Shown in pieces: positions 4,502-41,784 of a stretch of DNA of 64,000 nt. The first letter of the stretch is position 1; each line of letters begins with the position of its first letter. The stretch spans positions 206,076 through 270,075 of IMG/VR virus record IMGVR_UViG_3300036770_004143; one strand, 5' to 3'. The notes beneath the pieces were generated by a model. That model had not been told where the DNA came from. It made no database searches and was given only the letters and a program-made list of their open reading frames with translations. The position numbers and the translations under genes are program-made.

Positions 4502-4984
4502 TTAAAACTTTTTCATTTTGTAATGAATGGCAATGAATTTCTCATGATTTATATCATTTTCATCACATATTTTAATGATTTCTCTTAATTTACCACTAAC
4601 TTCTGAAACAACTTCACCTAATTTGTTTACCTCATCAATTAAGTTATCAATCTCTTCTTCTATGCTGGTATAACCCCCCTCTTCCCAATCAACATCATAC
4701 AATGTTTCATCATCATCTAATGTGATATATAGAAAGGCACTAAATTTACCACTATTATGTTCAATTTGAATATAAGATGCCACATCCATTGTATATAACT
4801 CAAAAAGAACCACATTTGGTTGTTCATTTTCAATAGAAAACTGGATGCCCAGATTTTTTAGGTGTTCACTTACATTTTCAATAAACTCTGCACTATTTGC
4901 CATAACTTTACTGTCCTCAACCAAATTTGTTGGTCTGGATTGAATAAGTTGTTTTAACCTATCAATATTTTCTTGTAATTTCAT
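4502..4984 (-). CDS. hypothetical protein with MKLQENIDRLKQLI leader
   Basis: ORF track; upstream ATATTTAT motif. Confidence 0.7.
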   Translation of the reverse strand: MKLQENIDRLKQLIQSRPTNLVEDSKVMANSAEFIENVSEHLKNLGIQFSIENEQPNVVLFELYTMDVASYIQIEHNSGKFSAFLYITLDDDETLYDVDWEEGGYTSIEEEIDNLIDEVNKLGEVVSEVSGKLREIIKICDENDINHEKFIAIHYKMKKF

Positions 4985-5011
4985 ATAGTTCTTTTACAAT
5001 AAATATATCCA

Positions 5012-5248
5012 TTAACTAATTAAATCAAATGATACATTATTACTATCCATCAATTCATGTAAGGTTGTCCTAACTTGAACCAAAGCATCATGTACCTCCT
5101 GGCTCATTGTGTCTGGTGCATACTTTGTCTCTGACCTCAAGTGTTGATCCAGTTCATATAAAGTCATCATTATGTCCCTACCTTTTGCAGCCAACATAAA
5201 TTGCTCCATATCCTCTGGTAGATTAAATTCCAATATTGCTTTTGCCAT
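5012..5248 (-). CDS. hypothetical protein
   Basis: MAKAILEFNLPED, 78 aa. Confidence 0.7.
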   Translation of the reverse strand: MAKAILEFNLPEDMEQFMLAAKGRDIMMTLYELDQHLRSETKYAPDTMSQEVHDALVQVRTTLHELMDSNNVSFDLIS

Positions 5249-5253
5249 CTTAT

Positions 5254-5436
5254 TTAGTTTTTAATGAATTTATAAAGTTCAAGTAATAATAACCCAGCTT
5301 CAGCCTTGGTTAGAAACATCTTACCCCTATCATGATTGATATAGGTATGAACAACAAGGATTTCCTCTGAACCATTTGATTTATCAATGGTCACTACTGG
5401 TGCTTCAACATAAATTTCATTGGGTTCTGTAATCAT
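5254..5436 (-). CDS. hypothetical protein
   Basis: 60-aa ORF downstream of the TATCTTTG box at 5456-5463. Confidence 0.55.
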   Translation of the reverse strand: MITEPNEIYVEAPVVTIDKSNGSEEILVVHTYINHDRGKMFLTKAEAGLLLLELYKFIKN

Positions 5437-5474
5437 TTTATTCTTGTTTAGACCTCAAAGATAGTAAAATACTT

Positions 5475-5636
5475 TTAATAATCCCAGGTAGATTTATCTA
5501 CTTTTTTACCATTCATAATGCAATCAAACACATAATCCCATTTTTGATTTTTAGTGATATAATCCACTAAAATTTGGCTAAACCCCAAGGAAGTGGATCC
5601 GTTTTCTGTTTCTAATTTAATGTCTAATATTTTCAT
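5475..5636 (-). CDS. hypothetical protein (MKILDIKLE...)
   Basis: Shortened from the track ORF to avoid overlap with the upstream gene. Confidence 0.45.
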   Translation of the reverse strand: MKILDIKLETENGSTSLGFSQILVDYITKNQKWDYVFDCIMNGKKVDKSTWDY

Positions 5637-5646
5637 AATTTTTGTT

Positions 5647-5970
5647 TTAATATAAGTCTTCTGAAAACAATCTGTTGCCCCTAATTTGGGATAAATCAAT
5701 TACCTGGTTTTCTTGTAATGCAATTTGAAGCCCCTCTTCACGGCTAACAAACCTATTTTTTGATGTCAAAAACCCTTGTTCATTTTCACCACTTTCAGCA
5801 TCTCTTAACCCTGTAATAGCATATTTTGTGTAAATACATTGCCCATGCCTATGGCCACTAAAAACAATACCCCTATCAAGGTTTGCTGGAAGATAAACCT
5901 CAATTGGTAATTCCTTTTTAAGTTCAATGTTTTTATACCAAATAGCAGCACATATTATTTTCTCATTCAT
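5647..5970 (-). CDS. conserved hypothetical phage protein
   Basis: ICAAIWY...GHRHGQC...EQGFLTSKNRFVSREE. Confidence 0.7.
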   Translation of the reverse strand: MNEKIICAAIWYKNIELKKELPIEVYLPANLDRGIVFSGHRHGQCIYTKYAITGLRDAESGENEQGFLTSKNRFVSREEGLQIALQENQVIDLSQIRGNRLFSEDLY

Positions 5971-6514
5971 GTTTTTGTTTATATTCTTTAATAAAAGTTT
6001 CTAAATCTTGTGGTATATCACCGTAATTATGTAATTCATATGCAAAGTTTTCAACCCATTCTTCTTCATCACCATATTCTAAATATTCATAACCAAATAA
6101 ATCATATTCTAATTCACATATTGCATGTCCAAGTTCATGAAATATTGTTGTTTCAACTGTCACCCATAATGGTACATTATATTCTTTAGAACCTTCTAAA
6201 ATATCCTTTTCTGATAAAATAACTATTGGTATTGATGAACTTGTACCACTTCTAAATCTACCTAAAGCACCTTCTCCAATATTATTGACAAATATTATTC
6301 TAATATCCTTGAATAAATCTATTTTATTTTTAAATATTTCAATTGCTTCCCTAGAAAACTTAACTATATCAGAATGTACTTTGGTTATATCTTTAACCCC
6401 ATAGTCATTAATAATATGGTTATAGTCATCACTTTCTTTATTTAAAAGAAATTCAATATCCTCATTCAAAAAATCTTGAATTGTGGTTTTAATAATTCTT
6501 CTCAAATCTTTCAT
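5963..6514 (-). CDS. HExxH zinc metallopeptidase-like protein
   Basis: TIFHELGHAICE...EEEWVENFA; leader ending FLNE. Confidence 0.65.
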   Translation of the reverse strand: MKDLRRIIKTTIQDFLNEDIEFLLNKESDDYNHIINDYGVKDITKVHSDIVKFSREAIEIFKNKIDLFKDIRIIFVNNIGEGALGRFRSGTSSSIPIVILSEKDILEGSKEYNVPLWVTVETTIFHELGHAICELEYDLFGYEYLEYGDEEEWVENFAYELHNYGDIPQDLETFIKEYKQKHE

Positions 6515-6554
6515 ATTTTATTTTATATATAAATATTAAGTTTTAAAAGTTTTG

Positions 6555-6640
6555 TGGTCAGGATAGGATTCGAACCTATATTGTTGAATTACCCAGCTTC
6601 AACTGCTTAAGTATAGCGTTTACCATTCCGCCACCTGACT
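6555..6640 (-). ncRNA. tRNA-like RNA A (Leu-type scaffold, no anticodon stem)
   Basis: AGTCAGG-TG-GCGGAATGGTAAACGC ... GTTGAA/TTCAAC arm ... ATAGG-TTCGAAT-CCTAT-CCTGACC-A. Confidence 0.65.
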
Positions 6641-6840: not shown

Positions 6841-6842
6841 CT

Positions 6843-7256: not shown

Positions 7257-7298
7257 GTTTATTTATTTTAGCAATAAATATACAAACTTTTTTAAAAA

Positions 7299-11654: not shown

Positions 11655-12185
11655 TTAAGAAAAAATGTTATTATTATTTATATCCCAAGTTCCATCATTA
11701 TCAACTGATTTAATTTGGTTTGGTTCAAATGTAACATAAACACTATCTGAATCTTGATAATCTTCGTCATCAATCCAAGAATCTTTTACATTCACAAAGA
11801 TAACACCATCATATTTACTTCTATTTTTATAAACATTTGCCACAACTTCTCTTGTGGAAGTACCATATTCACTCTCAATATCATCCCATTTTTTGTCTTT
11901 ACAATCCAAAATTAATGGTCTTTTAATACTCAAATAAACTTCATAAACAATTCCATCCCTAGAATACCCCTCGGCATTATAATAATCAGGAGTGAAATAC
12001 GTAATACCCATAAATTCATCAAACTCTTCATATGAACCGTGATAAACAGGTAATGGTTTCCCGTTATAAGCAACTTTACTACCACTAAACCACTTCCTAA
12101 AATTATTATTTAAGTTATTTTCAACTTCTTGTTCTTCATTCAAATATTTACGTATTGTTTTTACTATAACTTTTCTTAGTTCCAT
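11655..12185 (-). CDS. ADP-ribosyltransferase-fold protein (ART-PolyVal-like)
   Basis: WFSGSKV...PVYHGS...YFTPD..A..Y...VYEVYLSIKRPL...YVTFEPNQIKS; start MELRK at 12185. Confidence 0.65.
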   Translation of the reverse strand: MELRKVIVKTIRKYLNEEQEVENNLNNNFRKWFSGSKVAYNGKPLPVYHGSYEEFDEFMGITYFTPDYYNAEGYSRDGIVYEVYLSIKRPLILDCKDKKWDDIESEYGTSTREVVANVYKNRSKYDGVIFVNVKDSWIDDEDYQDSDSVYVTFEPNQIKSVDNDGTWDINNNNIFS

Positions 12186-12198
12186 ATTATTAATTAAT

Positions 12199-12612
12199 TT
12201 AAACAGTATGTGGGACAACCCACCTTATGCAATCCTGGGGTTGTCTGGTTATATGCTTGTAGTTGTTGATATAACCCATCATATTTGCAGATCCAATTGC
12301 ATTGGCTGAATGAACCTTAACCTCACATACTGGTGCACCATCCATCCATTTTTCAACCAACCACTTGGTGCAATCCATTCCAGTTTTTTCTGTGATGTTG
12401 TTGTAGTCCAATGTGAAATTGTGATATACATTGTTATGCCACTCTTCTATGGCTGTATCACCCAAGTCGTGATCCAATGATATAAGTTTAATGTTTTCTA
12501 ACCCAAGTTCAGTTATCTTGGAAACAAATTCATCATAACTTCTAACTATAATCCATCTGATATTGCTAGTTATAGGTGTACGCACGTCATCCAAATAAAT
12601 GTTATATTTCAT
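12199..12612 (-). CDS. cyclic-phosphate-processing receiver-like domain protein
   Basis: IYLDDVRTP, ISLDHDLGD, TGMDCTKWL, VHSANAIG. Confidence 0.7.
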   Translation of the reverse strand: MKYNIYLDDVRTPITSNIRWIIVRSYDEFVSKITELGLENIKLISLDHDLGDTAIEEWHNNVYHNFTLDYNNITEKTGMDCTKWLVEKWMDGAPVCEVKVHSANAIGSANMMGYINNYKHITRQPQDCIRWVVPHTV

Positions 12613-12666: not shown

Positions 12667-13116
12667 TTAATCCTTATACCTCCATTCATCACCTTCCACA
12701 TTAACATCATATACATCATCCCAAGTTATATAATCACGTAATGTGCCTTTTGAAAAATCATATATCTTATCATTTATTGTAATCCAGTGATGGGTCATTA
12801 ATGTTTGTTCATCACCATATTCATCAATATAAGGTTCATCTACTTCTATCTCACCAAATACTTTTTTAACAGTTTTGAACTCATAAATAATTGTTGAAAC
12901 AATACCCTGGCAATCCCCATTTTCTTGATTATCAACAAAACTTTTCCAGGCTAAATCCAAATCACCATCATATAACTCATTAAACTCCTCTTCATCTACT
13001 AATGTTTCCATTATTAGTGATTTTTTTATTTGCTGAATTAGTTCTTCTGAATTTTCAATACTTTCATTCAAATAACCCCTTATCACACTTTTAATAGTTT
13101 GCTTCAAATCTATCAC
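12667..13116 (-). CDS. putative papain/transglutaminase-fold protein
   Basis: GDCQG...THHWI...IYDFS Cys-His-Asp order; GTG start; YLNE leader. Confidence 0.5.
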   Translation of the reverse strand: MIDLKQTIKSVIRGYLNESIENSEELIQQIKKSLIMETLVDEEEFNELYDGDLDLAWKSFVDNQENGDCQGIVSTIIYEFKTVKKVFGEIEVDEPYIDEYGDEQTLMTHHWITINDKIYDFSKGTLRDYITWDDVYDVNVEGDEWRYKD

Positions 13117-13159
13117 CTATTTTGATTTATTTATAAATATCAGTATTTTAAATTTCTAC

Positions 13160-15564: not shown

Positions 15565-16296
15565 CTAATCTGGCAAACTTGTTCCCCTCTTTAACACAAC
15601 TTTATATGCCATCTTATTTCCTGTTCTTATGGCTTCTATGATGCTTTCATTCTTATATAGGGATAATGCCAAGGCAGCGGTAAAAGTGTCTCCTGCTCCA
15701 CTTATGTCAATGGTGGGGGCATTTTTCTCTTGCATGTAAACTATACCATTATGGGAAACTCCATTACCACCCATTGTTATGATAAACTTCTCTCTATTCT
15801 GATTATTAATCAAATCCTTATTGTTCTCATACTCATCCTGGTTTAGTTTAATATAATCAATGCTATTGATAATATCATCTGTTAATCTCCTCTTGCTATC
15901 CAATATGGTTGTCTTGGATTGCTTTGCTATTTTAACAATATCATCATTAGTCAAATAACCCTTATTGTAATCACTAATAATAGTGATACCATATTTGTTA
16001 TCAATGTCACCATAATAAGAATCAACATTATCCTCACCTGTGTCAACCCTTATAAAAGAATGATTGGTTTTCTCATCAACATACCTCTTCTTCTTTATCT
16101 TATTCTTCTGTGTAATTAACCTTATGCTCACATTTGAATCCATATTAATAACATTATTATATACATTCATAGCCATCCCACCAGCCTTAACCTTATGTGT
16201 TGGAATTAATACCGGAACAGGTGCTTCTGGTGATAACCTTGTGCTTTTTGTGTAAACATATATGTCTCTACAACTTTCTCCTATTACTATAATCAT
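15565..16296 (-). CDS. PfkB sugar kinase, HldE/RfaE kinase-like
   Basis: RLSPEAPVPV, ISDYNKG, DISGAGDTF. Confidence 0.85.
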   Translation of the reverse strand: MIIVIGESCRDIYVYTKSTRLSPEAPVPVLIPTHKVKAGGMAMNVYNNVINMDSNVSIRLITQKNKIKKKRYVDEKTNHSFIRVDTGEDNVDSYYGDIDNKYGITIISDYNKGYLTNDDIVKIAKQSKTTILDSKRRLTDDIINSIDYIKLNQDEYENNKDLINNQNREKFIITMGGNGVSHNGIVYMQEKNAPTIDISGAGDTFTAALALSLYKNESIIEAIRTGNKMAYKVVLKRGTSLPD

Positions 16297-17003
16297 TATC
16301 TATATATTTTTCCTTTTATAAACCCAGGTTTAATCATTTCTCTTAATTCTTCATCTGTATATTTTTCTAATTTTGTACTACCCATATACAACATACCCCC
16401 AACCTTTAAGCCTTTTGGTAATGAGGTTATTTTTATATGTCTTAAATCCAAATTACCACCAACTTTCAATCCTTCTGGTAATGATGTTATTTGTTCACAG
16501 CCAAATAATGACAAATCACGCCCAACTTTAAAACCTTTGGGTAATGAGGTTATCTTTGTATATGATAAATCCAAATTACCCCCAACTTCCAAGCCTTCTG
16601 GTAATGAGGTTATGTTTGAATCATATAAACTCAAATTACCCCCAACTTTCAATCCTTCTGATAATGAAGTTATATTTGTATATTCTAAATTCAAATCCAT
16701 TTTAACTTTTAATCCTTTAGGTAATGAAGTTATGTCTGTGTCGTTCAAACTCAAATGACCCCCAACTTCCAAACCTTCTGGTAATGAGGTTATTTTTGAT
16801 TGTGCTAAATACAAATCACCCCCAACTTTAAAACCTTCTGGTAATGAGGTTATATTTGTATATTCTAAATCCAAATCACCTTCAATGGTTAAATCTTTCT
16901 CTGTTAACGGTATATCATTCATATGTTTCCACAAAAATGGTGCTCTACGCTTCTCCTTCTCTTCAAGGAACTCAAATATTCTTTTTAATTGTTCTTCTTC
17001 CAT
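16296..17003 (-). CDS. LRR paralogue 1
   Basis: 20-21-aa repeats ITSLPEGLKVGGxLxL; shared N-cap LKRIFEFL and C-cap EMIKPGFIKG. Confidence 0.9.
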   Translation of the reverse strand: MEEEQLKRIFEFLEEKEKRRAPFLWKHMNDIPLTEKDLTIEGDLDLEYTNITSLPEGFKVGGDLYLAQSKITSLPEGLEVGGHLSLNDTDITSLPKGLKVKMDLNLEYTNITSLSEGLKVGGNLSLYDSNITSLPEGLEVGGNLDLSYTKITSLPKGFKVGRDLSLFGCEQITSLPEGLKVGGNLDLRHIKITSLPKGLKVGGMLYMGSTKLEKYTDEELREMIKPGFIKGKIYR

Positions 17004-17530
17004 TATCTATATATATTTCCTTTTATAAACCCAGGTTTAATCATGTCTCTTATCTCATCATCTGTGTATTTGGCTAAATTTGTTCCATAAATATACAAAT
17101 ATGTACCAACCTCCAATCCTTTTGGTAATGAAGTTATTTTTGTATGTCTTAAATCCAAATTACCGCCAACTTTCAATCCTTCTGGTAATGATGTTATTTG
17201 TTCACAGCCAAATAACGACAAGTCACGCCCAACTTTAAAACCTTCTGGTAGTGAAGTTATTTTACTATTTTTTAAATATATTATACCATCAACTTTTAAA
17301 CTTTTTGGTAATGAGGTTATGGCTAAACCAATCAAACTCAAGGAACCCCCCACTTCCAATCCTTCTGGCAATGATGTTATTTTTGAACCTTTTAAATTCA
17401 AATTACCTTTAACAATTAATTCTTCTTTTGTTAATGGCATTTCATTCTTAAATTTCCATAAAAATGGTACTTTGTGACCTTCCTTCTCTTCAAGGAACTC
17501 AAATATTCTTTTTAGTTGTTCTTCTTCCAT
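17003..17530 (-). CDS. LRR paralogue 2
   Basis: Same caps and repeats. Confidence 0.9.
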   Translation of the reverse strand: MEEEQLKRIFEFLEEKEGHKVPFLWKFKNEMPLTKEELIVKGNLNLKGSKITSLPEGLEVGGSLSLIGLAITSLPKSLKVDGIIYLKNSKITSLPEGFKVGRDLSLFGCEQITSLPEGLKVGGNLDLRHTKITSLPKGLEVGTYLYIYGTNLAKYTDDEIRDMIKPGFIKGNIYR

Positions 17531-18294
17531 TATCTTACTATTCTTCCGTTTATAAACCCAGGTTTAATCATTTCTCTTAATTCTTCATCATCTAAATCCA
17601 TTGCAAATACACTTGCTCGGATAAATAAATCACCCCCAACTTGCAAACCTTTTGGAATCGGTGTCACATTGGTGTTATATATATTTAAATACCCACCAAC
17701 TTTTAATCCTTCTGGTAATGAAATAGTCCCCAACCCAGTTAAATCCAAATCACCTTTAATATCCAAAGTGTTAGTAATAAAAGTTTTTGAAGTTATTAAT
17801 CCACCAATTTTTAAACCATTTGGTATTTTTGTTAACCTATCTAATTCTGTGTATTTCACAATTAAAATACCCCCAACTTGCAAACCTTTTGGAAGTGATT
17901 CCACTTGTGTATCTGATAAATCCAAAGAACCACCAACTTGCAAATCTTCTGGTAATGAGGTTATGTTTGCATATGATAAAGTTAAATCAACCCCAACTTT
18001 TAATCCCCTTGGTAATGATTTTATAAGACTATGATCCAAATATAGGCTACCACCAACTTCCAAACCTTCTGGTAATGTTTCTATATCTGATTCAGTTAAA
18101 TTCAAATCACCTCCAACTTTCAATCCTTCTGGTAGTGATTCTATATTTGAATCTGAAAAATCCAAATCACCTTTAACATTTAAATCTTCTTCTGTTAATG
18201 GTTGATTATTTATTAACTTCCAAATAAATGGCACTTTATGTTCTCCTTTTCCTTCAAGGAATTCAAATATTCTTTTTAGTTGCTCTTTTTCCAT
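17530..18294 (-). CDS. LRR paralogue 3
   Basis: Same caps; irregular central repeats. Confidence 0.9.
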   Translation of the reverse strand: MEKEQLKRIFEFLEGKGEHKVPFIWKLINNQPLTEEDLNVKGDLDFSDSNIESLPEGLKVGGDLNLTESDIETLPEGLEVGGSLYLDHSLIKSLPRGLKVGVDLTLSYANITSLPEDLQVGGSLDLSDTQVESLPKGLQVGGILIVKYTELDRLTKIPNGLKIGGLITSKTFITNTLDIKGDLDLTGLGTISLPEGLKVGGYLNIYNTNVTPIPKGLQVGGDLFIRASVFAMDLDDEELREMIKPGFINGRIVR

Positions 18295-18297
18295 AAG

Positions 18298-18813
18298 TTA
18301 CTCCCATTCATCATCTATTTCTCCACCCACTTGGCCACCAGTTGATTCAATCTTGTTATATAACTGATCAACTGTATATGATTTGGCAAGTGGAGTATTA
18401 GCAATATAAAAATTATTATAAATGTACAAATTATTTGGCACATTTGTTATTTCATTACATCCCATAATATATAAATTCTGCCCAACATACAAATTGTCTG
18501 GAAGACTTGATATATTAGTATAATCTAAATATAAATCATCTTGAACATATAATCTATCTGGTAGATTTATTAACTCTTTGCAAAAACTCAAGTTCATTGT
18601 ACCCTTAATATATAAGTCATTTGGCAATTTTCTTATATCAGAATTATTTACATCTAAATAACCATCATATACATATCTTTTATCACTTGAATATGCTTCA
18701 AGTTCATCAACCAAATCTTGCTTAAGAATGAAGTTTACCATTCTTATAGGTTGATCCACATTCTCTCTCTCTTTGAGAAATTTGAATATCTTGCTTAATT
18801 GTTCTGCTCTCAT
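18298..18813 (-). CDS. LRR paralogue 4 (divergent)
   Basis: LPDRLYV/LPDNLYV repeats; divergent caps (LSKIFKFL). Confidence 0.85.
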   Translation of the reverse strand: MRAEQLSKIFKFLKERENVDQPIRMVNFILKQDLVDELEAYSSDKRYVYDGYLDVNNSDIRKLPNDLYIKGTMNLSFCKELINLPDRLYVQDDLYLDYTNISSLPDNLYVGQNLYIMGCNEITNVPNNLYIYNNFYIANTPLAKSYTVDQLYNKIESTGGQVGGEIDDEWE

Positions 18814-19508
18814 GGTCTTCTTATTCTTCCTAATACAAATCCAGGTTTTATCATTTCTCTTATTTCATCATCTGTGTATTTTATTGCTATAAACAAATCA
18901 CCCCCAACTGCCAATCCTTTTGGCAATGTTTTTATTGATAACATAGATAAATCCAAGTCTTGGCCAACTTTTAAATCCTCTGGTAATGAGTTTATTTTTG
19001 TGTTATTCAACCACAAGTTGCCCCAAACTACCAATCCTTCTGGTAATGATTCTATTTTTGATTTTATTAAATCCAAACTACCCTGGAGTTTTAAACCTTT
19101 TGGTAATGAAGTTATTTCTGAACCAAGAAGACTCAAATTACGATAAACTTCCAAGCCTTCTGGTAATGAGGTTATTTTTGAATTATTTAAATTTAAATTA
19201 CCCGTAACTTTTAATCCTTTTGGTAATGATTTTATACTTGATGCGTTTAAGTCCAAATCACCCCCAACTTCCAAGCCTTCTGGTAGTGATTTTAAAAATT
19301 TGGTCATATCCAAGTGCAAATCACCATAAACTTTCAAGCCTTCTGGTAATGAGGTTACGTTACTATACGACAAATCCAAATCATCATCAACAATTAATTC
19401 TTCTTTTGTTAATGGTTGATTGTTTATAAACTTCCATCTTAATGGCACTTTATGTTCCCCTTTCCTTTCAAGGAAATCAAATATTCTTTTTAATGCTTCG
19501 TTTTTCAT
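18810..19508 (-). CDS. LRR paralogue 5
   Basis: Same caps and repeats. Confidence 0.9.
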   Translation of the reverse strand: MKNEALKRIFDFLERKGEHKVPLRWKFINNQPLTKEELIVDDDLDLSYSNVTSLPEGLKVYGDLHLDMTKFLKSLPEGLEVGGDLDLNASSIKSLPKGLKVTGNLNLNNSKITSLPEGLEVYRNLSLLGSEITSLPKGLKLQGSLDLIKSKIESLPEGLVVWGNLWLNNTKINSLPEDLKVGQDLDLSMLSIKTLPKGLAVGGDLFIAIKYTDDEIREMIKPGFVLGRIRRP

Positions 19509-19915
19509 TATCCTATTATTTCACCTTTTATAAATCCAGGTTTTATCATTTCTATTATATCCTCATGATAATAATCTTCACTTATGGGTGTTCTATAGAT
19601 ATACAATTTACCACCAACTTTCAAGCCTTTTGGTAGTGAATTTATTAATGAACCAGATAAATCCAAATTACCACCAACTTCCAACCCTTCTGGTAATGAT
19701 TTTATTATTGTTTCATCTAATTCCAAAGTACCCTCAACTTTCAAGCCTTCTGGCAATGATGTTATATTTATATCTGTTAAAATCAAATCACCTTTAACAT
19801 TTAATTCATCTTCTGTTAGTGGTATATTATTTTTCAACTTCCAAATAAATGGTGCTTTATGTTCCCCTTTCCTTTCAAGGAAATCAAATATTCTTTTTAA
19901 TACTTCTTTTTTCAT
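19508..19915 (-). CDS. LRR paralogue 6
   Basis: Short version, about 3 repeats. Confidence 0.9.
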   Translation of the reverse strand: MKKEVLKRIFDFLERKGEHKAPFIWKLKNNIPLTEDELNVKGDLILTDINITSLPEGLKVEGTLELDETIIKSLPEGLEVGGNLDLSGSLINSLPKGLKVGGKLYIYRTPISEDYYHEDIIEMIKPGFIKGEIIG

Positions 19916-20694
19916 TACCTTTTTATTTTTCCTTTTATAAATCCAGGTTGAATCATCTTTCTTAATTTATAAGTAGTAAGTTCATTTAAAGATGAATATT
20001 CCAACATTAAATCTCCAAAAACTTCTAATCCTTTTGGCAATGACTTTATTGTTGTATATTGCAATAATAAATCACCACCAACTTTCAAACCTTCTGGCAA
20101 TGATTTTATTTGCTCGCAACCAAATAATAACAAATCACCCCAAACTTCCAATCCTTCTGGTAATGAAGTTAATTCTTTGCAATATGCTAAATTCAATTTA
20201 CCATTAACTTTCAAATCATCTGGTAATGTTTCTATCTTTGACTCTCGTAAATATAACTCACCACCAACTTCCAATCCTTTTGGTAATGATTTTATACCTG
20301 TATCTAATAAATTTAGAACACCATCAACTTTTAAGCCTTCTGGTAATGATTCTATTTCTGAACGCATTAAATTTAATGATCCAACTTTCAAACTTTTTGG
20401 TAGTGTTTTTATTGACGTATAAGATAAATCCAAATTACCACCAACTTCCAACCCTTCTGGTAAAGAGATTATATTTGACCATTGTAAATTTAAATTACCA
20501 CCAACTTTCAATCCTTTTGGTAATGAGGTTATGTCTTTCATACTCAAATTCAAATCACCTTTAATATCCAAATCTTTCTTTGTTAATGGCTCATTAAAGA
20601 CTATTCTCCATAGTAATGTCCCTTTTGCTTGGTGTGATTTCTTTTCCTTATCTTCAAGAAATTCAAATATTCTTTTTAATGCTTCTTTTTCCAT
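19915..20694 (-). CDS. LRR paralogue 7
   Basis: Longest member, about 9 repeats. Confidence 0.9.
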   Translation of the reverse strand: MEKEALKRIFEFLEDKEKKSHQAKGTLLWRIVFNEPLTKKDLDIKGDLNLSMKDITSLPKGLKVGGNLNLQWSNIISLPEGLEVGGNLDLSYTSIKTLPKSLKVGSLNLMRSEIESLPEGLKVDGVLNLLDTGIKSLPKGLEVGGELYLRESKIETLPDDLKVNGKLNLAYCKELTSLPEGLEVWGDLLLFGCEQIKSLPEGLKVGGDLLLQYTTIKSLPKGLEVFGDLMLEYSSLNELTTYKLRKMIQPGFIKGKIKR

Positions 20695-21233
20695 TATCTT
20701 ATTATTTCCCCTTTTATAAATCCAGGTTTAATCATATCTCTTAATTCTTTATCTATGTATTCTAATAATGCTGTATTTTTAATAATCAACTCACCTTTAA
20801 CTTCCAACCCTTTTGGCAATAAGGTTATCTTTGTTCTTCTTAAATCCAAAGTGCCACCAACTTGCAAACCTTTTGGAAGCAATTCCACTTGTGTATCTGA
20901 TAAATCCAAATCCCTACCAACTTGCAAATCTTCTGGTAATGAGGTTATGTTTGAACCTTCCAAATATATATCACGTCTAACATATAAATCACTTGGTAAT
21001 GATTTTAATTTAGGTGTATAAGATAAATTCAAATTGCCACCAATTTTTAAACCTTCTGGTAAGTAGGGTATATCTGAATGTTCTAAAAACAAACCACCTT
21101 TAATATCCAAATCTTCCTTTGTTAATGGCTCATTAAATTCAATTTTCCATCTCAAAGTTCCTTTTACTTTGGCCAATTTATTTTCCTTCTCTTCAAGGAA
21201 TTCAAATATTCTTTTTAGTTGTTCTTTTTGCAT
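20694..21233 (-). CDS. LRR paralogue 8
   Basis: Same caps and repeats. Confidence 0.9.
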   Translation of the reverse strand: MQKEQLKRIFEFLEEKENKLAKVKGTLRWKIEFNEPLTKEDLDIKGGLFLEHSDIPYLPEGLKIGGNLNLSYTPKLKSLPSDLYVRRDIYLEGSNITSLPEDLQVGRDLDLSDTQVELLPKGLQVGGTLDLRRTKITLLPKGLEVKGELIIKNTALLEYIDKELRDMIKPGFIKGEIIR

Positions 21234-26194: not shown

Positions 26195-26608
26195 TTAAAA
26201 GTAATGAATCCTCTTTAAATACCCATCATCTCCAACCATATTTCTCAATTCACTATTACTATATTCACCTAATGGTGATGTATCAATGTATAAAGTGCCA
26301 CCAACTTTCAATCCTTCAGGTAATGAGTGTAAGTTGTAACAATTTTGTAAAATCAAATTACCTCTAACTATTAACCCTTCTGGTAATGAACTTATATTAT
26401 CACAAAAACTTAAAATCAAATCACCACTAACTTCCAATCCTTCTGGTAGTGATTCTATATTTGAATATGTCAAATCCAAATCACCTTCAATATCTAAATC
26501 TTTTTCTGTTAATGGTATTTCATTTTTCCATTTCCATAAGAATGGTGGATTGTGTTCTTCCTTTTCTTCAAGGAATTCAAATATTCTTTTTAATGCTTCT
26601 TTTTTCAT
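26195..26608 (-). CDS. LRR paralogue 11
   Basis: Same N-cap and repeats; variant C-cap. Confidence 0.9.
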   Translation of the reverse strand: MKKEALKRIFEFLEEKEEHNPPFLWKWKNEIPLTEKDLDIEGDLDLTYSNIESLPEGLEVSGDLILSFCDNISSLPEGLIVRGNLILQNCYNLHSLPEGLKVGGTLYIDTSPLGEYSNSELRNMVGDDGYLKRIHYF

Positions 26609-27255
26609 TATCTAAATATTCCTCCTTTTATAAATCCAGGTTTAACCATTTCTCTTAATTGATTATCTGAATATTCTTCTAATGCCGTACCTAATATAAA
26701 TAGGTGTTCACCAATTTCTAATCCTTTTGGTAATGAGGTTATTTTTGTGCCTGATAAATCCAAATGCTCACTAACTGTAAGTCCTTGGGGTAATGATTTT
26801 AATGTTGTACAACTATTTAAAGCAAGATAACCATCAACCTTTAAACCTTTTGGTAAAGATTGTATTTTTGAAAAAGCCAAATCAATACTCCCATTAACCT
26901 CCAAATCTTTTGGCAGTATCTCAATGGATGTGTATGATAAAATTAAATCTTCTTCAACTACCAATCCTTTTGGTAAATATTTTATGCTTGAATATGATAA
27001 ATTGAAATGTTCTCCAACTTCCAATCCTTCTGGTAATGATTCTATTTTTGAAGCATATAAACTTAAATTACCCCCAACCTTCAACCCTTTTGGTAATGAG
27101 GTAATTTCTGATCCTTCAAAAATTAAATCCCCTTTAACATTTAACTCTTCTTTTGTTAATGGTATATTATTAATCAATTTCCATTTAACTGGTAGATTAT
27201 ACCCTTCCTTCTCTTTTAGGAATTCAAATATTCTTTTTAAGGTTTCTTTTTTCAT
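26608..27255 (-). CDS. LRR paralogue 12
   Basis: Same caps and repeats. Confidence 0.9.
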   Translation of the reverse strand: MKKETLKRIFEFLKEKEGYNLPVKWKLINNIPLTKEELNVKGDLIFEGSEITSLPKGLKVGGNLSLYASKIESLPEGLEVGEHFNLSYSSIKYLPKGLVVEEDLILSYTSIEILPKDLEVNGSIDLAFSKIQSLPKGLKVDGYLALNSCTTLKSLPQGLTVSEHLDLSGTKITSLPKGLEIGEHLFILGTALEEYSDNQLREMVKPGFIKGGIFR

Positions 27256-27263
27256 ATCATATA

Positions 27264-27734
27264 TTAATTATCATCATCTTCTTCATAATCATCTTCATCT
27301 TCATAATCATAATCAATGTAATATTCAGAAATTATATCACCTTTTATAAAACCAGGTTCAATTGATTTTCTTAAATGATCATCATTTTTATAGTAATAAG
27401 GTAGTTCAGATTCAGTTACATCTAAATGCCCCCCAACTTTCAATCCTTTTGGTAATGAAGTTATGCTTGTTCTTACTAAAAATAAACTATCACCAATTTC
27501 CAATCCTTCTGGTAGTGATTTTATTTTTGAACGAGATAAATCTAACCAACCACTAATTTTCAAGCCTTTTGGTAATGAGGTAATTTTTCTATCCTGTAAA
27601 TCCAAATCACCTTTAATATTTAATTCTTCTTCTGTTAATGGCTCACCATTTTCCCATTTCCACAAGAATGGAGTATTATGTTCTCCCTTCTTTTCAAGGA
27701 ACTCAAATATTCTTTTTAATGCTTCTTTTTCCAT
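27264..27734 (-). CDS. LRR paralogue 13 with acidic tail
   Basis: Same caps; ends YDYEDEDDYEEDDDN. Confidence 0.9.
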   Translation of the reverse strand: MEKEALKRIFEFLEKKGEHNTPFLWKWENGEPLTEEELNIKGDLDLQDRKITSLPKGLKISGWLDLSRSKIKSLPEGLEIGDSLFLVRTSITSLPKGLKVGGHLDVTESELPYYYKNDDHLRKSIEPGFIKGDIISEYYIDYDYEDEDDYEEDDDN

Positions 27735-28636
27735 TATTTTCTATTTGTTTTCTCACCCTCTATTCTTACAGATATTTTTGGTTTATACCCTTTTGGCAAT
27801 CTATTATCTATTCCAACAAATTCCCCCATTTCATTATCCATTCTAATAGTAATTTCTCTCTTATCCAAATTCATCATTATCTGCCCCACAGTCTGCATAT
27901 TATACATATTCTTCATTCTATAAGGATTCAAGAACTTATTTTTCTTATATTGTTCTTTCATCTTATCAATAACATCTTGATCCTTTTGAGCATCTTGCAA
28001 ATGCTTTTTGGCCAACTCCAATCTTGAATGGGATGACTTCTTCTTTATGCCATAAATATAACCTGTTTTTTTGTGTACTATGCCATGATTGGTTCTTACC
28101 TCAACCTTATCATCACCCATCTTTGTTATGACCGGAGTGTCCTTACTTGTGAGTTCAATAATATATATATTCTTTGGGCTTCCAACAATTGTCTGCCCCT
28201 TAATTCCAACATTCTTTGGATCATCTGCGTCATAAGATATGATTGATTTAATCACATCTTTTAAATTCCTAAAACTTAATGCTCTACGTATTTTCTTACC
28301 ATCATTGGAGTTCTTAACTTTCTTGGACTTGAATACTTTATTACTTTCCTTCTCATCTTGCCTAACCAATAGACTTGAATTAACTATTCCAATACCGTAT
28401 TCATTCATTCCCTCGGACCAGTCTGTTTCTGTATCTCTCCAATACATAACCTCAACATCATCCACAATCTCATGGACAATTTCCATCTTTGCCAAATAAC
28501 CCCTATCCCTGTTTTTGGCTATAACATTCCCATCATCTAATCTAACAGCAGCAATTGTGCATTCTTGGATTAGCCTTTGTTCATCTAAAATATTTACTTG
28601 ACTTTCAGTAAGCAAAATGAATTTATTATCTTTCAT
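27734..28636 (-). CDS. Ntn-hydrolase-like protein (C45/NRDE-like) with 25-aa leader
   Basis: LIQE-CTIAAV...IAKNRDR...SEGMNEYGIGIVNSSL...RTNHG. Confidence 0.6.
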   Translation of the reverse strand: MKDNKFILLTESQVNILDEQRLIQECTIAAVRLDDGNVIAKNRDRGYLAKMEIVHEIVDDVEVMYWRDTETDWSEGMNEYGIGIVNSSLLVRQDEKESNKVFKSKKVKNSNDGKKIRRALSFRNLKDVIKSIISYDADDPKNVGIKGQTIVGSPKNIYIIELTSKDTPVITKMGDDKVEVRTNHGIVHKKTGYIYGIKKKSSHSRLELAKKHLQDAQKDQDVIDKMKEQYKKNKFLNPYRMKNMYNMQTVGQIMMNLDKREITIRMDNEMGEFVGIDNRLPKGYKPKISVRIEGEKTNRK

Positions 28637-28655
28637 TTTTTTTACTATAAATATA

Positions 28656-29856: not shown

Positions 29857-30204
29857 ATGAAATTGAAAATAAATGATTTAACCTTTGAAGCAAAATTGGC
29901 AATATCTCGTGAAGAGAAAGAAAAAGGAATGATGAATAAGGAATTTGATGAAACCTTTAATTCTATGTTATTCCTTATGGATGAACCCAGATCCTGTTTC
30001 TGGATGAAGAATTGTATCATACCATTGGATATAATAATGATTGATGATAATGTAATCACAAAGATACATCACAATTGCCCCCCATGTACAACTGAAAGAT
30101 GTAAAAGATATTGTGGTGATGGGAATATGGTGTTAGAGGTGATAGGGGGAACGTGTAAAAAAAATAACATCAAGGAGGGTGATGTCCTTGATGTTAATAG
30201 TTAA
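29857..30204 (+). CDS. DUF192 family protein
   Basis: KGMM...MLF...FWMKNCIIPLDIIMID...VLEV. Confidence 0.8.
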   Translation: MKLKINDLTFEAKLAISREEKEKGMMNKEFDETFNSMLFLMDEPRSCFWMKNCIIPLDIIMIDDNVITKIHHNCPPCTTERCKRYCGDGNMVLEVIGGTCKKNNIKEGDVLDVNS

Positions 30205-31682
30205 TATTTGCTAACTTCTGTTTCTAACTTATCTTTAATTTTACTTGCAATAGTTTTCATTAAACTCAAGTATTCTGTCTCTCCGCCCTCTTTTTTAGAA
30301 TCAGATTTGACATATTTTGGTTCTGATGATGCTGTTCTTGGTTCTGTTGATTTTGGTTTTGGTGTTCTTGGACCAGGAGGCCTTTTACCCCTACCTATGA
30401 AGTTCAATCCTGAAATGTTTGTAATACTTGGATGACCACCACTATTTGCTTGGATTATATCCCAAGCATTTAATGCAACACAATCTAATTTTTGTTTCTC
30501 ATCTTCTGTTAATTCACTAAATAACTTATCCATAATTGATTTCAATTCAGCATTTGTTTTTGGCGCACCAGGTTTTGTATAATACTTATCCCCATATGTT
30601 GCATGAAAATCATTGTATGTAAATCCAACACTATCTTCCTTTGCTTTTGATTCATTAACCCACTTCATTGTTGATAATAAGATTAACTTATCTTCCAACA
30701 TTGGTTTGAATTGTGCCATAACCTTTTGTGCTAATTCCCCTAAATGAAGTGCCTTGTATTTTGGATTTTCTTTAAATGGATTTTTTGAAACCTGGATTAA
30801 ACCCAATGGCCAATAAATAATCAAAAAGTTTGCATCTGGTTGATTCTTAAATGCAACATATCTATCATATGATCCTGTACCCTTTAAAGTACCCATACCA
30901 TATTGATATATAATACCATCCTCATATTTAACACTTGGACTGTCTTTCATTGATTCAATATATTTCTCTGCATTCATCTGCAAATCCTCTGGTAATTCAT
31001 CTGTATTCTCTTTCATCCATTTCTTAATATTATTCAATATAGATAATATAGATGGTGTTGAATTCATTACAAGATATTCAAGAAATCCTTTCTTATTCTT
31101 AAATGCCAATAATAATTTATTTGCAACAAGACCAAGTAATAATTTATTCTCCCTCATTGATTTTGACTTATCATACTTATATAAGTAATTGATAACATTG
31201 TCTGGGGTTAAACCTTGTCTAACAAAATCAGCCGAATCCACTGTATTGATTATCAAAATATCTGTATCACTAAACAAATCACTTTTTGAAATAACTTGTG
31301 AAATGGTTTCAGCATTTGACCTTGCTTTCTTAAATTGTCCTGATGTTTTTTTGGTATCAACACCAATCTGGCTATCATGGTGATCTGTATGTATTTTGAA
31401 CATAGGTTTTCCATGTGCAAAATCCACTAGAACAGGCATAGTATCCCCTAGGGCATCATTCTTCTTTACAGCAAACTCCATATCCCCGTATTGGATAACA
31501 TGTGCATCAATAACTTCAATGCCATTATCTTCCAAGTATTTTTTCATAGCTAAAGCCGATGTAACACCATCAAGCCCTCAGAGGTCCTGGTGAAAGTAGA
31601 TCTCCGCTTTATTATAACGGTTTGCAAGAGCATCAATATCTCTAATTCCACTTTCTACCAGGACCTGATTGTTTTTTTTCAT
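30201..31682 (-). CDS. DHH-family phosphoesterase with an in-frame TGA (31578-31580) inside motif I
   Basis: Manual translation MKKNNQVLVESGIRDIDALANRYNKAEIYFHQDL*GLDGVTSALAMKKYLE...VLVDFAH...HTDHHD...SNAETI...DSAD...GGH; the track ORF from 31547 lacks motif I. Confidence 0.75.
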
Positions 31683-31717
31683 AGTCGTTTATTTTTTTTA
31701 TTACAATAAATATATAA

Positions 31718-32985: not shown

Positions 32986-33588
32986 TTATAATAATTTTAT
33001 TAATCTTCTTTCTCCACCTCCACGGGCTTCTCTATACATATCATTAAATGTTTTTTCATCTATTTCATATAAAAAACTTTCATCCATACTATATAGAAAC
33101 TTTTTATCTCTATGACTACCCTTTGCTAATTTAGAGAAAAACTCTTTTGTTAAATCAGTATCTATTTCCATATTTTTATCCCAGCCTTTTTTTGTGAAAC
33201 TATTTATAACCTTACCCATACCTGATGCATCATTAGTTCCAATTTCAACAAACTCATTACTATCTTTATATATAACTGAATACTGATCATAATACTCCCC
33301 CAAGAAAAGTAAGCGTTCTTTACTTATGTTTGGTATAAAAAGTGTTTTTTCATTTATCCAATCACCTTCTTCTTTAAAACCACCTTCTAATTCAATATAA
33401 CCTAATTTAAGATTATTTCTAACAAAAGATTTTAATTCTTTATACCTTTCTAAATTTTCAACCCTAGATAAGTATTTTCTAAATGGAGAAATCACGCCAA
33501 AAGATGCTGAATCATCCTGAACATATTTCCAAACTCTTGATAAACTACTTTCTTGTAGTATAACATTTTTTACTTTCCTTTTTTCCAT
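32986..33588 (-). CDS. conserved T4-like phage protein (DUF3293-like)
   Basis: ESSLSRVW...GVISPFR...GYIEL.GG..E...EKTLFI...YDQYSVI. Confidence 0.55.
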   Translation of the reverse strand: MEKRKVKNVILQESSLSRVWKYVQDDSASFGVISPFRKYLSRVENLERYKELKSFVRNNLKLGYIELEGGFKEEGDWINEKTLFIPNISKERLLFLGEYYDQYSVIYKDSNEFVEIGTNDASGMGKVINSFTKKGWDKNMEIDTDLTKEFFSKLAKGSHRDKKFLYSMDESFLYEIDEKTFNDMYREARGGGERRLIKLL

Positions 33589-39247: not shown

Positions 39248-39420
39248 AATAATAGTTTTAATTTAGCAAAAAATCCCAGTTTATTATTCTTGGGTTTAAC
39301 TATGTCTTCCTTTTTTATTTTCTTTAAATCATTGATGAACTTCATCTTCTGATGCTCCAACTCCTGGTAATCCCTGTTTCTTTCTGCTTCTAGGATTTTC
39401 AACATTTTCTCCTTTTCCAT
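39235..39420 (-). CDS. hypothetical protein
   Basis: 61-aa ORF, amphipathic C-terminus FFAKLKLLLWGK. Confidence 0.6.
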   Translation of the reverse strand: MEKEKMLKILEAERNRDYQELEHQKMKFINDLKKIKKEDIVKPKNNKLGFFAKLKLLLWGK

Positions 39421-39802
39421 TTTTTAATTCATTTTTTGGAAGTAAAAATTCTAATTTGCTTAAATCATCAAGTTTATTTTGATTGAAAAGAACTTTTAAT
39501 ATATCAATATTCTTGTTAAGTAAAATGCTCTTCTGTTCAATCTCTTTATTGTCTCTGATTATTTTAAATATTTTTTCAATACCAATATTAAACTTTTCCT
39601 CATCAGCCTCAATAACAAAAGTTATTCCAGTGCTATCTGCATCATTCTTAATGGCAAATGTCACAACAAACTTATCTTTCATATATGCTTGGGGAATTAA
39701 CCAAGTCTTGGGAAAAACCAAATCAATGAATACAAATTTATCTGCAACCCTAATAGAGGATAAATATGAATCAAATTCTTGTATATTTTTAAATAAACTC
39801 AT
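39329..39802 (-). CDS. hypothetical protein
   Basis: 157-aa ORF; 3' end overlaps the next gene by 92 nt. Confidence 0.6.
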   Translation of the reverse strand: MSLFKNIQEFDSYLSSIRVADKFVFIDLVFPKTWLIPQAYMKDKFVVTFAIKNDADSTGITFVIEADEEKFNIGIEKIFKIIRDNKEIEQKSILLNKNIDILKVLFNQNKLDDLSKLEFLLPKNELKNGKGENVENPRSRKKQGLPGVGASEDEVHQ

Positions 39803-39805
39803 TTT

Positions 39806-40000
39806 TTATGAAAATTTAATAAAAGTTATTATAAAACTTAAAGCAATACCAAAATATATTTTCTCATATGTTGTAAGTTTATTTTTTTCAATATAAGAGG
39901 CATCACCAAAAAGTAAAAGTACTATTCTAGTAGTAAAACTAATCACTACCAGAATAGAAAATATAAACAAAAAATAGAATATTGGCAAATAATTATTCAC
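39806..40000 (-). CDS. two-TM membrane protein
   Basis: Two hydrophobic helices. Confidence 0.6.
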   Translation of the reverse strand: MNNYLPIFYFLFIFSILVVISFTTRIVLLLFGDASYIEKNKLTTYEKIYFGIALSFIITFIKFS

Positions 40001-40181
40001 TTTCTTTAGTTGTTTTTCTCTGTTTAACTATATCAAGTCTGCTCTCCTGTAAAAGTGCCTTTATTTCTTGTGCTGTTTTTCTTGCCCTTGTCCCTGCACT
40101 TTTATTCCCCTTGCGATAGAATCTATCAGCATCAGAATAAAACAAATCCATTAATTGTTTGATTTTTTGAATCGTTTCCAT
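39993..40181 (-). CDS. histone H1-like (Hc1 family) DNA-binding protein
   Basis: DADRFYRKGNKSAGTRARKTAQEIK. Confidence 0.75.
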   Translation of the reverse strand: METIQKIKQLMDLFYSDADRFYRKGNKSAGTRARKTAQEIKALLQESRLDIVKQRKTTKESE

Positions 40182-40193
40182 TTTATTTAAATT

Positions 40194-40661
40194 TTATTTT
40201 ATTACTAAATTTTTATCAAGTAGTTTATATATCTCTGTTAATATCTGCAAATCAGCTTTACTATATGTCCCTTCAATATCAAACAATTCTTTTATGAATG
40301 ATTTTATTGCCAAGTGATTTATACCATCAACTCTATTATAGAATATATCAAAATAGAAAATCTTCAAATACTTGTAATGATCACCATCTTCATTTAAAAT
40401 GATATTTTCTTTTTTAAAAGAATCAATAGTTTTTACCCAACACCAGTTAAAATGTTTCTCTTTATCATCATCAGAATAATCAATTGCTAATGTGTTATTC
40501 TCACTATCCCCCAAATATGTTTTTATTATTGTGTTGTTTAATGAAACTAACACATCAGAAAATAAATCAACTTTCTCCCTATTAATATTATTCATATTAA
40601 AATAGGTTTCCAGTTCATCCTTTGGTATTGGCACAGCCAACCATTTAAAAAAATTCTCCAT
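40194..40661 (-). CDS. hypothetical protein
   Basis: 155-aa ORF. Confidence 0.7.
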   Translation of the reverse strand: MENFFKWLAVPIPKDELETYFNMNNINREKVDLFSDVLVSLNNTIIKTYLGDSENNTLAIDYSDDDKEKHFNWCWVKTIDSFKKENIILNEDGDHYKYLKIFYFDIFYNRVDGINHLAIKSFIKELFDIEGTYSKADLQILTEIYKLLDKNLVIK

Positions 40662-40731
40662 AAACTAACATCTATGGAGAATTTTAACACAAAAAAAATA
40701 TAATTGTATATATTATGTTACAAACTTTAAA

Positions 40732-41784
40732 TTACTGTGTGATTTTATTATAGTTAATCAACTTCTTCATTTTATTAAACTCTTCACTTAAAACTACATC
40801 ATTATTTTCAATAGACTCACCCTTCATTTTCTTAATGAAATCAGGTCTTTTATCACCATTCTGAACAATATGAACATCTTGTGATTTTTCATAAGCCCTC
40901 TTCTTTTCTGAACCATAAAAATTATTCTTTCTTTTTGTATTCATTTTCTTATTAATATCTGTTTCAACAGCATTTGCCCACTTGGGATTATTCCCAGTCC
41001 TTGAACTTCCCTCAATATTATCTTTCATCCATTCTTCATTAGGATCCACCTCATCATACATTAAGTTCTCCATTCCTGGTCCACGACCCAAATTTTCAAC
41101 ATACTCTTCTTCTGCACCATCCATACGGTAACCAACAATATCAGACTTCTTTAATTGCATATTTGATTGGGGGAAAGAATCTGGGTTCTCAACATACTTA
41201 CCATTTGAGCCATATTTGATATATTCCTTCATCTTCTTACCAACATCTTTCATGTTGTCATCATTCTCCTTTTTTGACCTCTTTAATAGAGTTTCAACAT
41301 TAGTTAGACTTTTTGGTTTTTTTGTAAATGTATCTCCATCCGCTTCATTAACTATATTTCTAATAAATGAAACCAATCCTTCTTCTGTCATCTTAACAGT
41401 TTTATCCCTTAATGTAATATCACCTGTTTCATTAATGATGTCTTCAATAAATGAAATAAGACTTTCTTCAGTCATCTTAACATTTTTCTTACCTTTCTTC
41501 AATAGTTTGAAATCTTCAGAATCAATCTTGCCATTCTTATTCTTATCAATCTTATGTTGCTTACCAACCAATTTTTCCTTAACTTCTTTCTTACCTTTCT
41601 TCAATAGTTTGAAATCTTCAGAATCAATTTTACCATTTTTGTTCTTGTCAATCTTATGTTGTTTACCAACCAATTTCTCATCTATATTTTTCTTCACTTT
41701 CTTCTCAAATAACAAGTTTGACCTTTTACTAAATTCCTCATTCAATACCTTGTTAACAATTGAATCAATATTATTTTTATTCAT
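40732..41784 (-). CDS. putative head core/internal protein with duplicated EF-hand-like motif
   Basis: Two DKNKNGKIDSEDF loops; several (V/I/L)xE motifs. Confidence 0.6.
   Translation of the reverse strand: MNKNNIDSIVNKVLNEEFSKRSNLLFEKKVKKNIDEKLVGKQHKIDKNKNGKIDSEDFKLLKKGKKEVKEKLVGKQHKIDKNKNGKIDSEDFKLLKKGKKNVKMTEESLISFIEDIINETGDITLRDKTVKMTEEGLVSFIRNIVNEADGDTFTKKPKSLTNVETLLKRSKKENDDNMKDVGKKMKEYIKYGSNGKYVENPDSFPQSNMQLKKSDIVGYRMDGAEEEYVENLGRGPGMENLMYDEVDPNEEWMKDNIEGSSRTGNNPKWANAVETDINKKMNTKRKNNFYGSEKKRAYEKSQDVHIVQNGDKRPDFIKKMKGESIENNDVVLSEEFNKMKKLINYNKITQ
41476..41679 (-). repeat. two 102-nt (34-aa) tandem coding repeats
   Basis: EKLVGKQHKIDKNKNGKIDSEDFKLLKKGKK(E/N)VK x2 with synonymous differences. 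Confidence 0.9.

Follow-up and report, generated by a model that had tools for sequence, protein, structure and literature searches.

Interchangeable N-terminal leaders on unrelated proteins of an uncultured T4-like phage as probable capsid-targeting propeptides

Background

Phage proteins injected together with the DNA are the first to act in a new host, where they take over transcription and disarm defences, and they are hard to spot in sequence. In phage T4, the internal proteins carry propeptides of 10-19 residues which direct proteins to the core and are cut off by gp21, and this capsid-targeting sequence (CTS) has been suggested as a general loading route for diverse proteins in T4-like phages (PMC9026906, PMC3012670). 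Moreover, the Alt protein of T4, which is an ADP-ribosyltransferase (ART), is packaged as a gp21-processed head protein (PMC9026906). The present study concerns short N-terminal leaders, ending in hydrophobic-x-Glu (h-x-E), on unrelated proteins encoded in the 270,075-bp IMG/VR virus record IMGVR_UViG_3300036770_004143 (G+C 30%), and especially in its final 64 kb, hereafter the window. An original prediction made from the window had proposed one shared leader, ending in (L/I/V)-x-E and mostly preceded by an upstream motif, as a possible capsid-targeting signal.

The analysis described here indicates that the leaders are probably capsid-targeting propeptides of the T4 type, with new sequences and a very large cargo set.

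Results

Leaders on unrelated proteins

All eight N-termini named in the original prediction are present, and the seven for which coordinates had been reported translate accordingly; the eighth, of a DHH-like gene, starts at window position 31682 on the minus strand. The candidate leaders and related features, in window positions, are as follows.

6461-6514, minus strand: type I leader, residues 1-18 ending FLNE, of gene 5963-6514 (w5963); 24.5 bits with a profile from other contigs
12135-12185, minus strand: type I leader, residues 1-17 ending YLNE, of the ART gene 11655-12185 (w11655); other-contig profile and translation
13063-13116, minus strand: type I leader, residues 1-18 ending YLNE, GTG start, of gene 12667-13116 (w12667); translation and 24-mer clustering
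4916-4984, minus strand: type II-like leader, residues 1-23 (LQE at 3-5, LVE at 21-23), of gene 4502-4984 (w4502); 9.9 bits with the IMG/VR type II profile
28562-28636, minus strand: type IV-like leader and propeptide, residues 1-25 (LTE, LDE, IQE), of gene 27734-28636 (w27734); the invariant Cys26 is directly next
33550-33588, minus strand: variable prefix, residues 1-13 ending LQE, of gene 32986-33588 (w32986); the segment after the prefix resembles the type IV core
41737-41784, minus strand: type I-like leader, residues 1-16 ending VLNE, of gene 40732-41784 (w40732)
41344-41475, minus strand: two internal leader-like repeats of w40732, residues 104-119 and 132-147, each ending I-x-N-E
30201-31682, minus strand: DHH-like gene with a 10-residue prefix ending VLVE (31653-31682)

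A bare (L/I/V)-x-E occurs in the first 25 residues of 151 of the 370 predicted proteins and is hence unremarkable alone. The resemblance extends further, since N-terminal 24-mers of proteins with non-homologous mature parts gave 14 pairs scoring at least 45, as against none for internal 24-mers; at a score of at least 40, the comparison gave 19 N-terminal pairs and 2 internal ones. The mature parts of the leader proteins are non-homologous and belong to different Pfam families. Sharing of N-terminal leaders by unrelated proteins was thus upheld; the single leader originally proposed was replaced, on clustering, by at least four interchangeable families.

Type I, '..DLR..IKTTI..(F/Y)LNE': w5963, w11655, w12667 and a pair of genes immediately upstream of the window; by looser resemblance, w40732 and g96963
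Type II, 'MNLQENI.RI..': four genes at 174-184 kb of the genome, and w4502
Type III, 'MKILINE..IINE': three genes
Type IV, '..(R/K)LTES.L..I(I/V)K+V..E': at least six genes, and w27734

The leaders are about 16-25 residues long and end in hydrophobic-hydrophobic-x-Glu (h-h-x-E), as does the site in the capsid protein described below. The strings 'MKLQE', 'MKDNKFILLTE' and 'MEKRKVKNVILQE', which had been taken for whole leaders, are only the opening residues of type II or type IV leaders that run on, with a second h-x-E about 10-15 residues further along. The T4 CTS is a 10-residue peptide, and apart from the terminal h-x-E it does not look similar to the present leaders.

As seeding from this genome would be circular, leader profiles were built solely from IMG/VR contigs other than this phage. 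They detected 11 genes of this genome at 9.9 bits or more, with every match N-terminal; one of the 11, at genome 135002-135811, is absent from the gene calls. Including weaker and type III cases, leader genes number about 22, or 6% of the genome's genes. As helices, the leaders are more amphipathic than other N-termini (0.63 versus 0.49, p 2.6e-4). Furthermore, 31-59% of the residues conserved between leaders are encoded by different codons, and therefore selection on the peptide is indicated.

Position of the putative cleavage site

The 23 IMG/VR orthologs of w27734 all have an invariant Cys, within 'C(T/V)IA(A/G)V', as the first residue of the conserved domain, and the sequence before it is hypervariable bar its last four residues, which read h-h-x-E in 23 of 23 (variants include LIQE, LIEE, LIKE, TLVE, VIHE, VLNE and VLQE). 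The Pfam family AAT (PF03417, N-terminal nucleophile (Ntn) hydrolases of peptidase family C45) is matched by nine of 12 orthologs, with a best E-value of 2.4e-7; w27734 itself reaches 21.3 bits, under the cut-off of 23.2. A profile of the orthologs gave nothing significant against PDB sequences. The invariant spacing of C26, N42-R43-D44 and N183-H184-G185 in w27734 resembles the layout of the AAT active site, and is taken as a lead only. In Ntn hydrolases, the residue that becomes the new N-terminus is the nucleophile; the mature w27734 chain should therefore start at Cys26, which would place cleavage exactly after Glu. The position of the site, in this family and the two that follow, is the strongest indirect evidence obtained.

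Two further families show a comparable boundary. DHH orthologs carry a prefix of 7-10 residues ending (I/L)-x-E immediately before the conserved 'SG(L/I)RD', apart from one ortholog without a prefix, and w32986 orthologs carry a variable prefix of 10-31 residues ending (I/V/L)-x-E immediately before the conserved 'S.LSRI'.

The leader attributed to the DHH gene is indeed present at the N-terminus; the gene, however, is split by a stop codon, as an in-frame TGA at 31578-31580 cuts the leader off from the main open reading frame (ORF), 30201-31547. The stop lies in a 9-nt insertion within the 'HQDLDG' motif; the insertion is missing from other orthologs, and in a relative of about 84% identity the gene is split by TAA instead of TGA. 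The downstream ORF is under purifying selection (pN/pS 0.18), and the 34 upstream codons are almost identical in DNA. To judge from these sequences, it looks like a maintained split gene which uncouples the leader from the enzyme.

Head genes and prohead protease

By its sequence, this is an uncultured, T4-like phage. Its head genes stand in T4 order, with a very acidic scaffold (pI 4.1), portal and terminase, together with the following two genes.

Genome 104848-105549: prohead protease, Peptidase_S77 (gp21 family), E 5e-23
Genome 99254-101047: major capsid protein, Gp23 family, E 1e-64

The prohead protease is 32% identical to T4 gp21 and retains the His and Ser of wild-type T4, both of which are Ala in the T4 gp21 chain of PDB 5JBL. 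These residues are presumably the catalytic pair, which fits the Ala substitutions in 5JBL. In the capsid protein, '..SYLINE|AAS' aligns onto '..SFLTE|AEI' of T4 gp23, which is cut at the aligned FLTE|A site, after Glu65; YLINE|A is invariant across 72 relatives. T4 gp24 and Alt are also cut at sites of the h-h-x-E type, LLRE and LITE respectively, and both strings were found in the translated T4 sequences.

The capsid protein has at least 597 relatives in IMG/VR at 75-88% identity. By the same protein, cultured relatives are distant: the nearest is Flavobacterium phage vB_FspM_immuto (about 42%), followed by Microcystis phage Mel-JY01 and Rhodothermus phage RM378. The host is likely to belong to the Bacteroidota, to judge from the nearest cultured relative, from a TonB-receptor-like gene whose signal peptide is of Bacteroidota style, and from '..TTTG' promoter-like boxes. 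In vB_FspM_immuto_3-5A (106876-148456), small proteins near the head genes have leader-like N-termini, and the capsid site reads 'IVSE|A'.

Between the portal and protease genes, in the position of T4 gp67/gp68, lies a gene (genome 106084-106788, minus strand) whose 234-residue product begins with a leader-like segment and contains 15 h-x-E sites, i.e. 6.4 per 100 residues versus 1.8 proteome-wide (3.5x). The scaffold protein has 19 such sites. Such sites are as expected for core proteins shredded by the protease, and the protein in the gp67/gp68 position is likely a prohead core protein degraded in this way. Across large leader-bearing contigs, the S77 protease gene was found in 11 of 13, and in all seven of those at least 90% complete.

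Portability and distribution in IMG/VR

A 12-residue DNA pattern of type IV gave 45 IMG/VR matches, all 45 at ORF residues 3-8, with at least six unrelated proteins downstream; a looser search over about 1.56 Mb of relatives raised this to at least 19 cargo clusters, and one 322-kb relative contig has five type IV-tagged genes in tandem. The type II start had at least 159 IMG/VR matches, located at ORF N-termini at a median of 6 codons from the upstream stop; among the matches listed were at least 114 unique complete proteins in at least 53 cargo clusters. All 57 matches to the type I pattern, which contains no start codon, were likewise at ORF N-termini. In this limited sampling of IMG/VR, more than 70 unrelated cargo clusters stand behind the leaders in total. 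The type II pattern was matched only twice in 596 Gb of prokaryotic genomes, once in a 3.3-kb contig of a Bacteroides metagenome-assembled genome and once by chance.

Orthologs also exchange leader types. In the family of g96963, a head-module protein encoded beside the capsid gene, relatives have a type IV leader where this genome has a type I-like one, and w27734 orthologs carry type IV, type II or type I-like leaders. The portable character of the leader, as proposed at the outset, is therefore confirmed: the same leaders precede different domains, the same domain follows different leaders, and orthologs swap types.

A word-based search of 5.8 billion sequences with a 71-residue leader protein returned a single near-identical match; the leaders are too short for significance among that many sequences. 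No description of the leader strings was found in the searchable literature.

A late-promoter-like motif upstream

The upstream motif claimed for most of the listed genes is present: TATTTAT lies at -17 to -31 in six of the eight, and there is none before w11655 and w32986. The copies in the window are listed here.

4999-5006, minus strand: ATATTTAT motif, 22 nt before the start of gene 4502-4984
6529-6536, 13133-13140, 28647-28654 and 31706-31713, minus strand: further ATATTTAT copies
About 21 nt before 41784, minus strand: variant CTATTTAT

As a word, ATATTTAT(A) is not enriched in the window (29 occurrences versus 19.5 +/- 4.4). Its signal is positional, with a peak 21-24 nt ahead of start codons, and it also precedes scaffold, protease, baseplate and tail genes. 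It stands before 10 of the 22 leader genes and 43 of the 348 others (odds ratio 5.9, p 2.7e-4), and several more leader genes lie directly downstream of a ATATTTAT-bearing gene. From its sequence and placement, ATATTTAT(A) is probably the late promoter of this lineage, the counterpart of T4 TATAAATA.

Just upstream of the ART start, where ATATTTAT would be, a G+C-rich stem-loop, 'GACAACCC..GGGTTGTC', was noted at 12186-12240 (minus strand); it may serve to terminate the upstream gene, or may be a hairpin with a regulatory role. A tRNA-Leu gene lies immediately upstream of the w5963 promoter.

Predicted cargo

The cargo of w11655 is an ADP-ribosyltransferase of the ART-PolyVal clade (PF18760, E 3e-19, 70.6 bits against a gathering cut-off of 31.2). 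The start of the gene is most likely the ATG at 12185 rather than the upstream TTG at 12218, and an IMG/VR ortholog has a canonical type I leader. For w5963, termed a metallopeptidase in the original prediction, the HExxH motif is there (HELGH at residue 126), and beyond it just a weak atlas lead to Peptidase_M78 was obtained. IMG/VR orthologs of w12667 have a canonical type I leader; its description as Cys protease-like found no support. Single-sequence AlphaFold models were too poor for use (pLDDT 42 for w5963, 39 for w12667). The product of w32986 carries a degenerate type IV leader on a weakly DUF3293-like cargo.

The w40732 product is a Lys-rich protein of 350 residues with duplicated EF-hand-like loops. 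Its internal leader-like repeats are candidate internal cleavage sites, and the protein is a candidate abundant internal or core protein which would be cut repeatedly. It is adjoined by a gene for a 459-residue DUF5661 and HD-domain protein (41809-43188, minus strand).

Elsewhere in the genome, two type II genes at 175-179 kb match ART-PolyVal below the cut-off (22-26 bits), and g183418, also of type II, has an HExxH motif and a weak SprT-like match. A Tae4-like amidase is encoded by g176492 (type IV), and DUF6576 by g204481 (type I).

Other features of the genome

About 50 small paralogs in tandem arrays combine a conserved N-terminus, '..ALKRIFEFLEEKE', with variable repeats, '..ITSLPEGLKVGGDL..', that resemble leucine-rich repeats (LRR).

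Window 16296-22170 and 26195-27734, minus strand: LRR-like paralog arrays
Genome 40-44, 93-97, 103-105, 119-121 and 150-154 kb: further LRR-like paralog arrays

Three of these paralogs lie between the genes for the prohead protease and the scaffold. The paralogs might constitute one more tagged family, the fifth, as the 'EFL.E' of their N-terminal part is reminiscent of how the type I leader ends; the leader profiles do not pick them up. A further array at about 190-202 kb of the genome consists of roughly 25 tiny genes (60-75 residues), the majority of which begin 'MKN(I/V)..'.

The window also contains eight tRNA genes (Lys, Gln, Cys, His, Arg, Tyr, Thr, Leu) at 264-860, 2670-2842 and 6554-6640 (minus strand), and a 766-residue protein with SPRY, DUF7483 and glycine-rich domains (61455-63755, minus strand) which is probably structural or a fibre. 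A first tblastn search with one structural protein of the window as query found no match.

Discussion

Leaders as probable capsid-targeting propeptides

If the leaders act as those of T4 do, each would be made late in infection as a short amphipathic N-terminal helix and would attach its protein to the scaffolding core while the prohead assembles. Its removal by the gp21-family prohead protease, after hydrophobic-hydrophobic-x-Glu, would follow, and the mature enzyme would stay in the head and enter the next host with the DNA. Where the cargo is Ntn-hydrolase-like, the catalytic Cys would be laid bare at the N-terminus by this cut, and head maturation would thereby double as enzyme activation. 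Core binding, cleavage by the phage's own protease and ejection into the host are what we infer from the T4 example. Of the explanations considered this is the best one, and it agrees with every computational test made. The T4-type leader as first proposed is in agreement with the T4-like phage, the gp21-family protease and a leader end matching the predicted capsid site, and differs from what was found in that there are several leader families.

A number of points weigh against this interpretation. Virion packaging, cleavage and injection of the leader proteins rest on analogy with T4, and many predicted mature cargo proteins are acidic, in contrast to the basic internal proteins of T4. The h-x-E motif is common in the proteome, so that short leaders such as those of the DHH gene and w32986 are weak when taken alone; w32986 and the ART gene are, moreover, the two without the promoter motif. 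A tblastn search of 23-residue leaders against the cultured phages in the collection gave no match. The Ntn hydrolases usually process themselves, hence the cut before Cys26 need not be that of the prohead protease. Finally, when a complex between the prohead protease and residues 1-40 of w5963 was predicted, the score was 0.00, which is evidence neither way.

Another view is that the leader is a propeptide which keeps potentially self-harmful enzymes (ARTs, peptidases, the amidase, the Ntn hydrolase) inactive in the producing cell and is removed by autoprocessing or another protease, with no targeting to the head. A cut before Cys26 is what any Ntn zymogen requires, and the cargo is largely enzymatic. 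This explanation nevertheless seems unlikely, as it leaves unexplained why unrelated folds have the same few leaders, does not account for the invariant P1 Glu and hydrophobic P3 shared with the capsid-protein site or for the association with late head-gene promoters, and would need one 16-residue helix to inhibit many folds, which is itself improbable. Similarly low is the probability that the leader is a docking helix for another late structure or compartment, such as the tail, baseplate, membrane or a phage chaperone, with an incidental terminal h-x-E. Amphipathic helices would serve such a purpose, and the Tae4-like cell-wall amidase could equally work from the tail tip; however, the motif at the leader end is that of the capsid maturation site and falls exactly at domain boundaries in three cargo families, and a head-module protein encoded beside the capsid gene (g96963 and its orthologs) bears a leader.

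Two explanations dispense with a function of the peptide. Conserved gene starts could be expression or recombination cassettes (promoter, ribosome site and first codons) spread by shuffling, and the neighbouring pairs g179736/g181109 and g174811/g175399 do have nearly identical leader DNA, with leader genes clustered in plastic regions. The different codons at 31-59% of conserved residues speak for selection at the level of the peptide instead, leaders are kept across contigs despite diverged DNA, and w40732 has internal leader copies; the cassette explanation is accordingly considered quite improbable. Chance resemblance in an AT-rich proteome, rich in Lys, Asn and Ile, has a negligible probability. 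It could draw on the frequency of h-x-E and on single-linkage clustering at loose scores, which chains 132 proteins, yet it is refuted by the controls, in which internal segments gave 0-2 pairs versus 14-19 for N-terminal ones; positions in IMG/VR are exclusively N-terminal, with just 2 matches in 596 Gb of prokaryotic genomes.

Beyond the proposed capsid-targeting role in this phage, a wider claim is put forward tentatively, as a real possibility: that the leaders are a general head-loading signal in a large group of uncultured T4-like phages (130-370 kb, probably infecting Bacteroidota), that hundreds of unrelated tagged metagenome proteins are injected effectors, which the tag by itself would suffice to catalogue, and that prohead maturation activates some of them. 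If the leaders do mark head-loaded cargo, a simple N-terminal profile would give access to the injected effector set of an abundant uncultured phage group, and the T4 CTS idea, applied hitherto to engineering in a single phage, would turn into a discovery tool of general use. In addition, the new and longer leaders are offered for packaging foreign proteins in phage heads.

Comparison with described systems

The closest parallel is provided by the T4 CTS of IPI, IPII and IPIII and the Alt propeptide, which are likewise N-terminal on unrelated proteins and end in hydrophobic-x-Glu, with the same motif at the capsid site. Both systems have a gp21-family serine protease, late expression (here probable, from the promoter-like motif) and an ADP-ribosyltransferase among the cargo. 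The differences are considerable. In sequence, the present leaders seem to be unrelated to the CTS, and at least four families of them can be told apart; at 16-25 residues they exceed it in length, and a second h-x-E site is often present. The genome has about 22 leader genes, as against a handful in T4, and over the whole clade the cargo families run to dozens. The cargo here is mostly enzymatic and often acidic, whereas the T4 internal proteins are small and basic, and the ART belongs to the ART-PolyVal clade, not to that of Alt. The present system is, furthermore, known from sequence alone.

Giant phages such as phiKZ, 201phi2-1 and SPN3US (gp175/gp245) also have many internal head proteins with N-terminal propeptides, which a gp21-related protease cuts after Glu (PMC10052503, PMC5694885). 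In phiKZ and SPN3US, however, the motif is (A/S/G)-x-E, with a small residue at P3 (PMC10052503), whereas P3 is L, I or V both in the present leaders and at the capsid site. The propeptides of the giant phages are, moreover, mostly long (111-254 residues), with no shared portable tag (PMC10052503, PMC5694885). Propeptides of the phiKZ/SPN3US type were ruled out on account of L, I or V at P3 in place of a small residue.

The Dar system of phage P1 (DarA, DarB, Hdf, Ddr) resembles the present one in that the head is loaded with non-structural anti-restriction proteins which are to be delivered, and of which some undergo processing; loading there proceeds by an ordered hierarchy of protein-protein contacts, without a common cleavable N-terminal tag (PMC9024508, PMC12810830). 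The polyvalent proteins described by Iyer et al. (2017) share with the present cargo the ART-PolyVal domain, by direct match, and zincin-type peptidases and cell-wall enzymes, by class, together with predicted co-delivery with the DNA (PMC5512222). In those proteins the domains are fused in one giant polypeptide (PMC5512222), whereas here they are encoded by separate small genes, each with its own leader. The leader system would thus be an alternative to giant polyvalent proteins, made up of many small, tagged, single-domain effectors.

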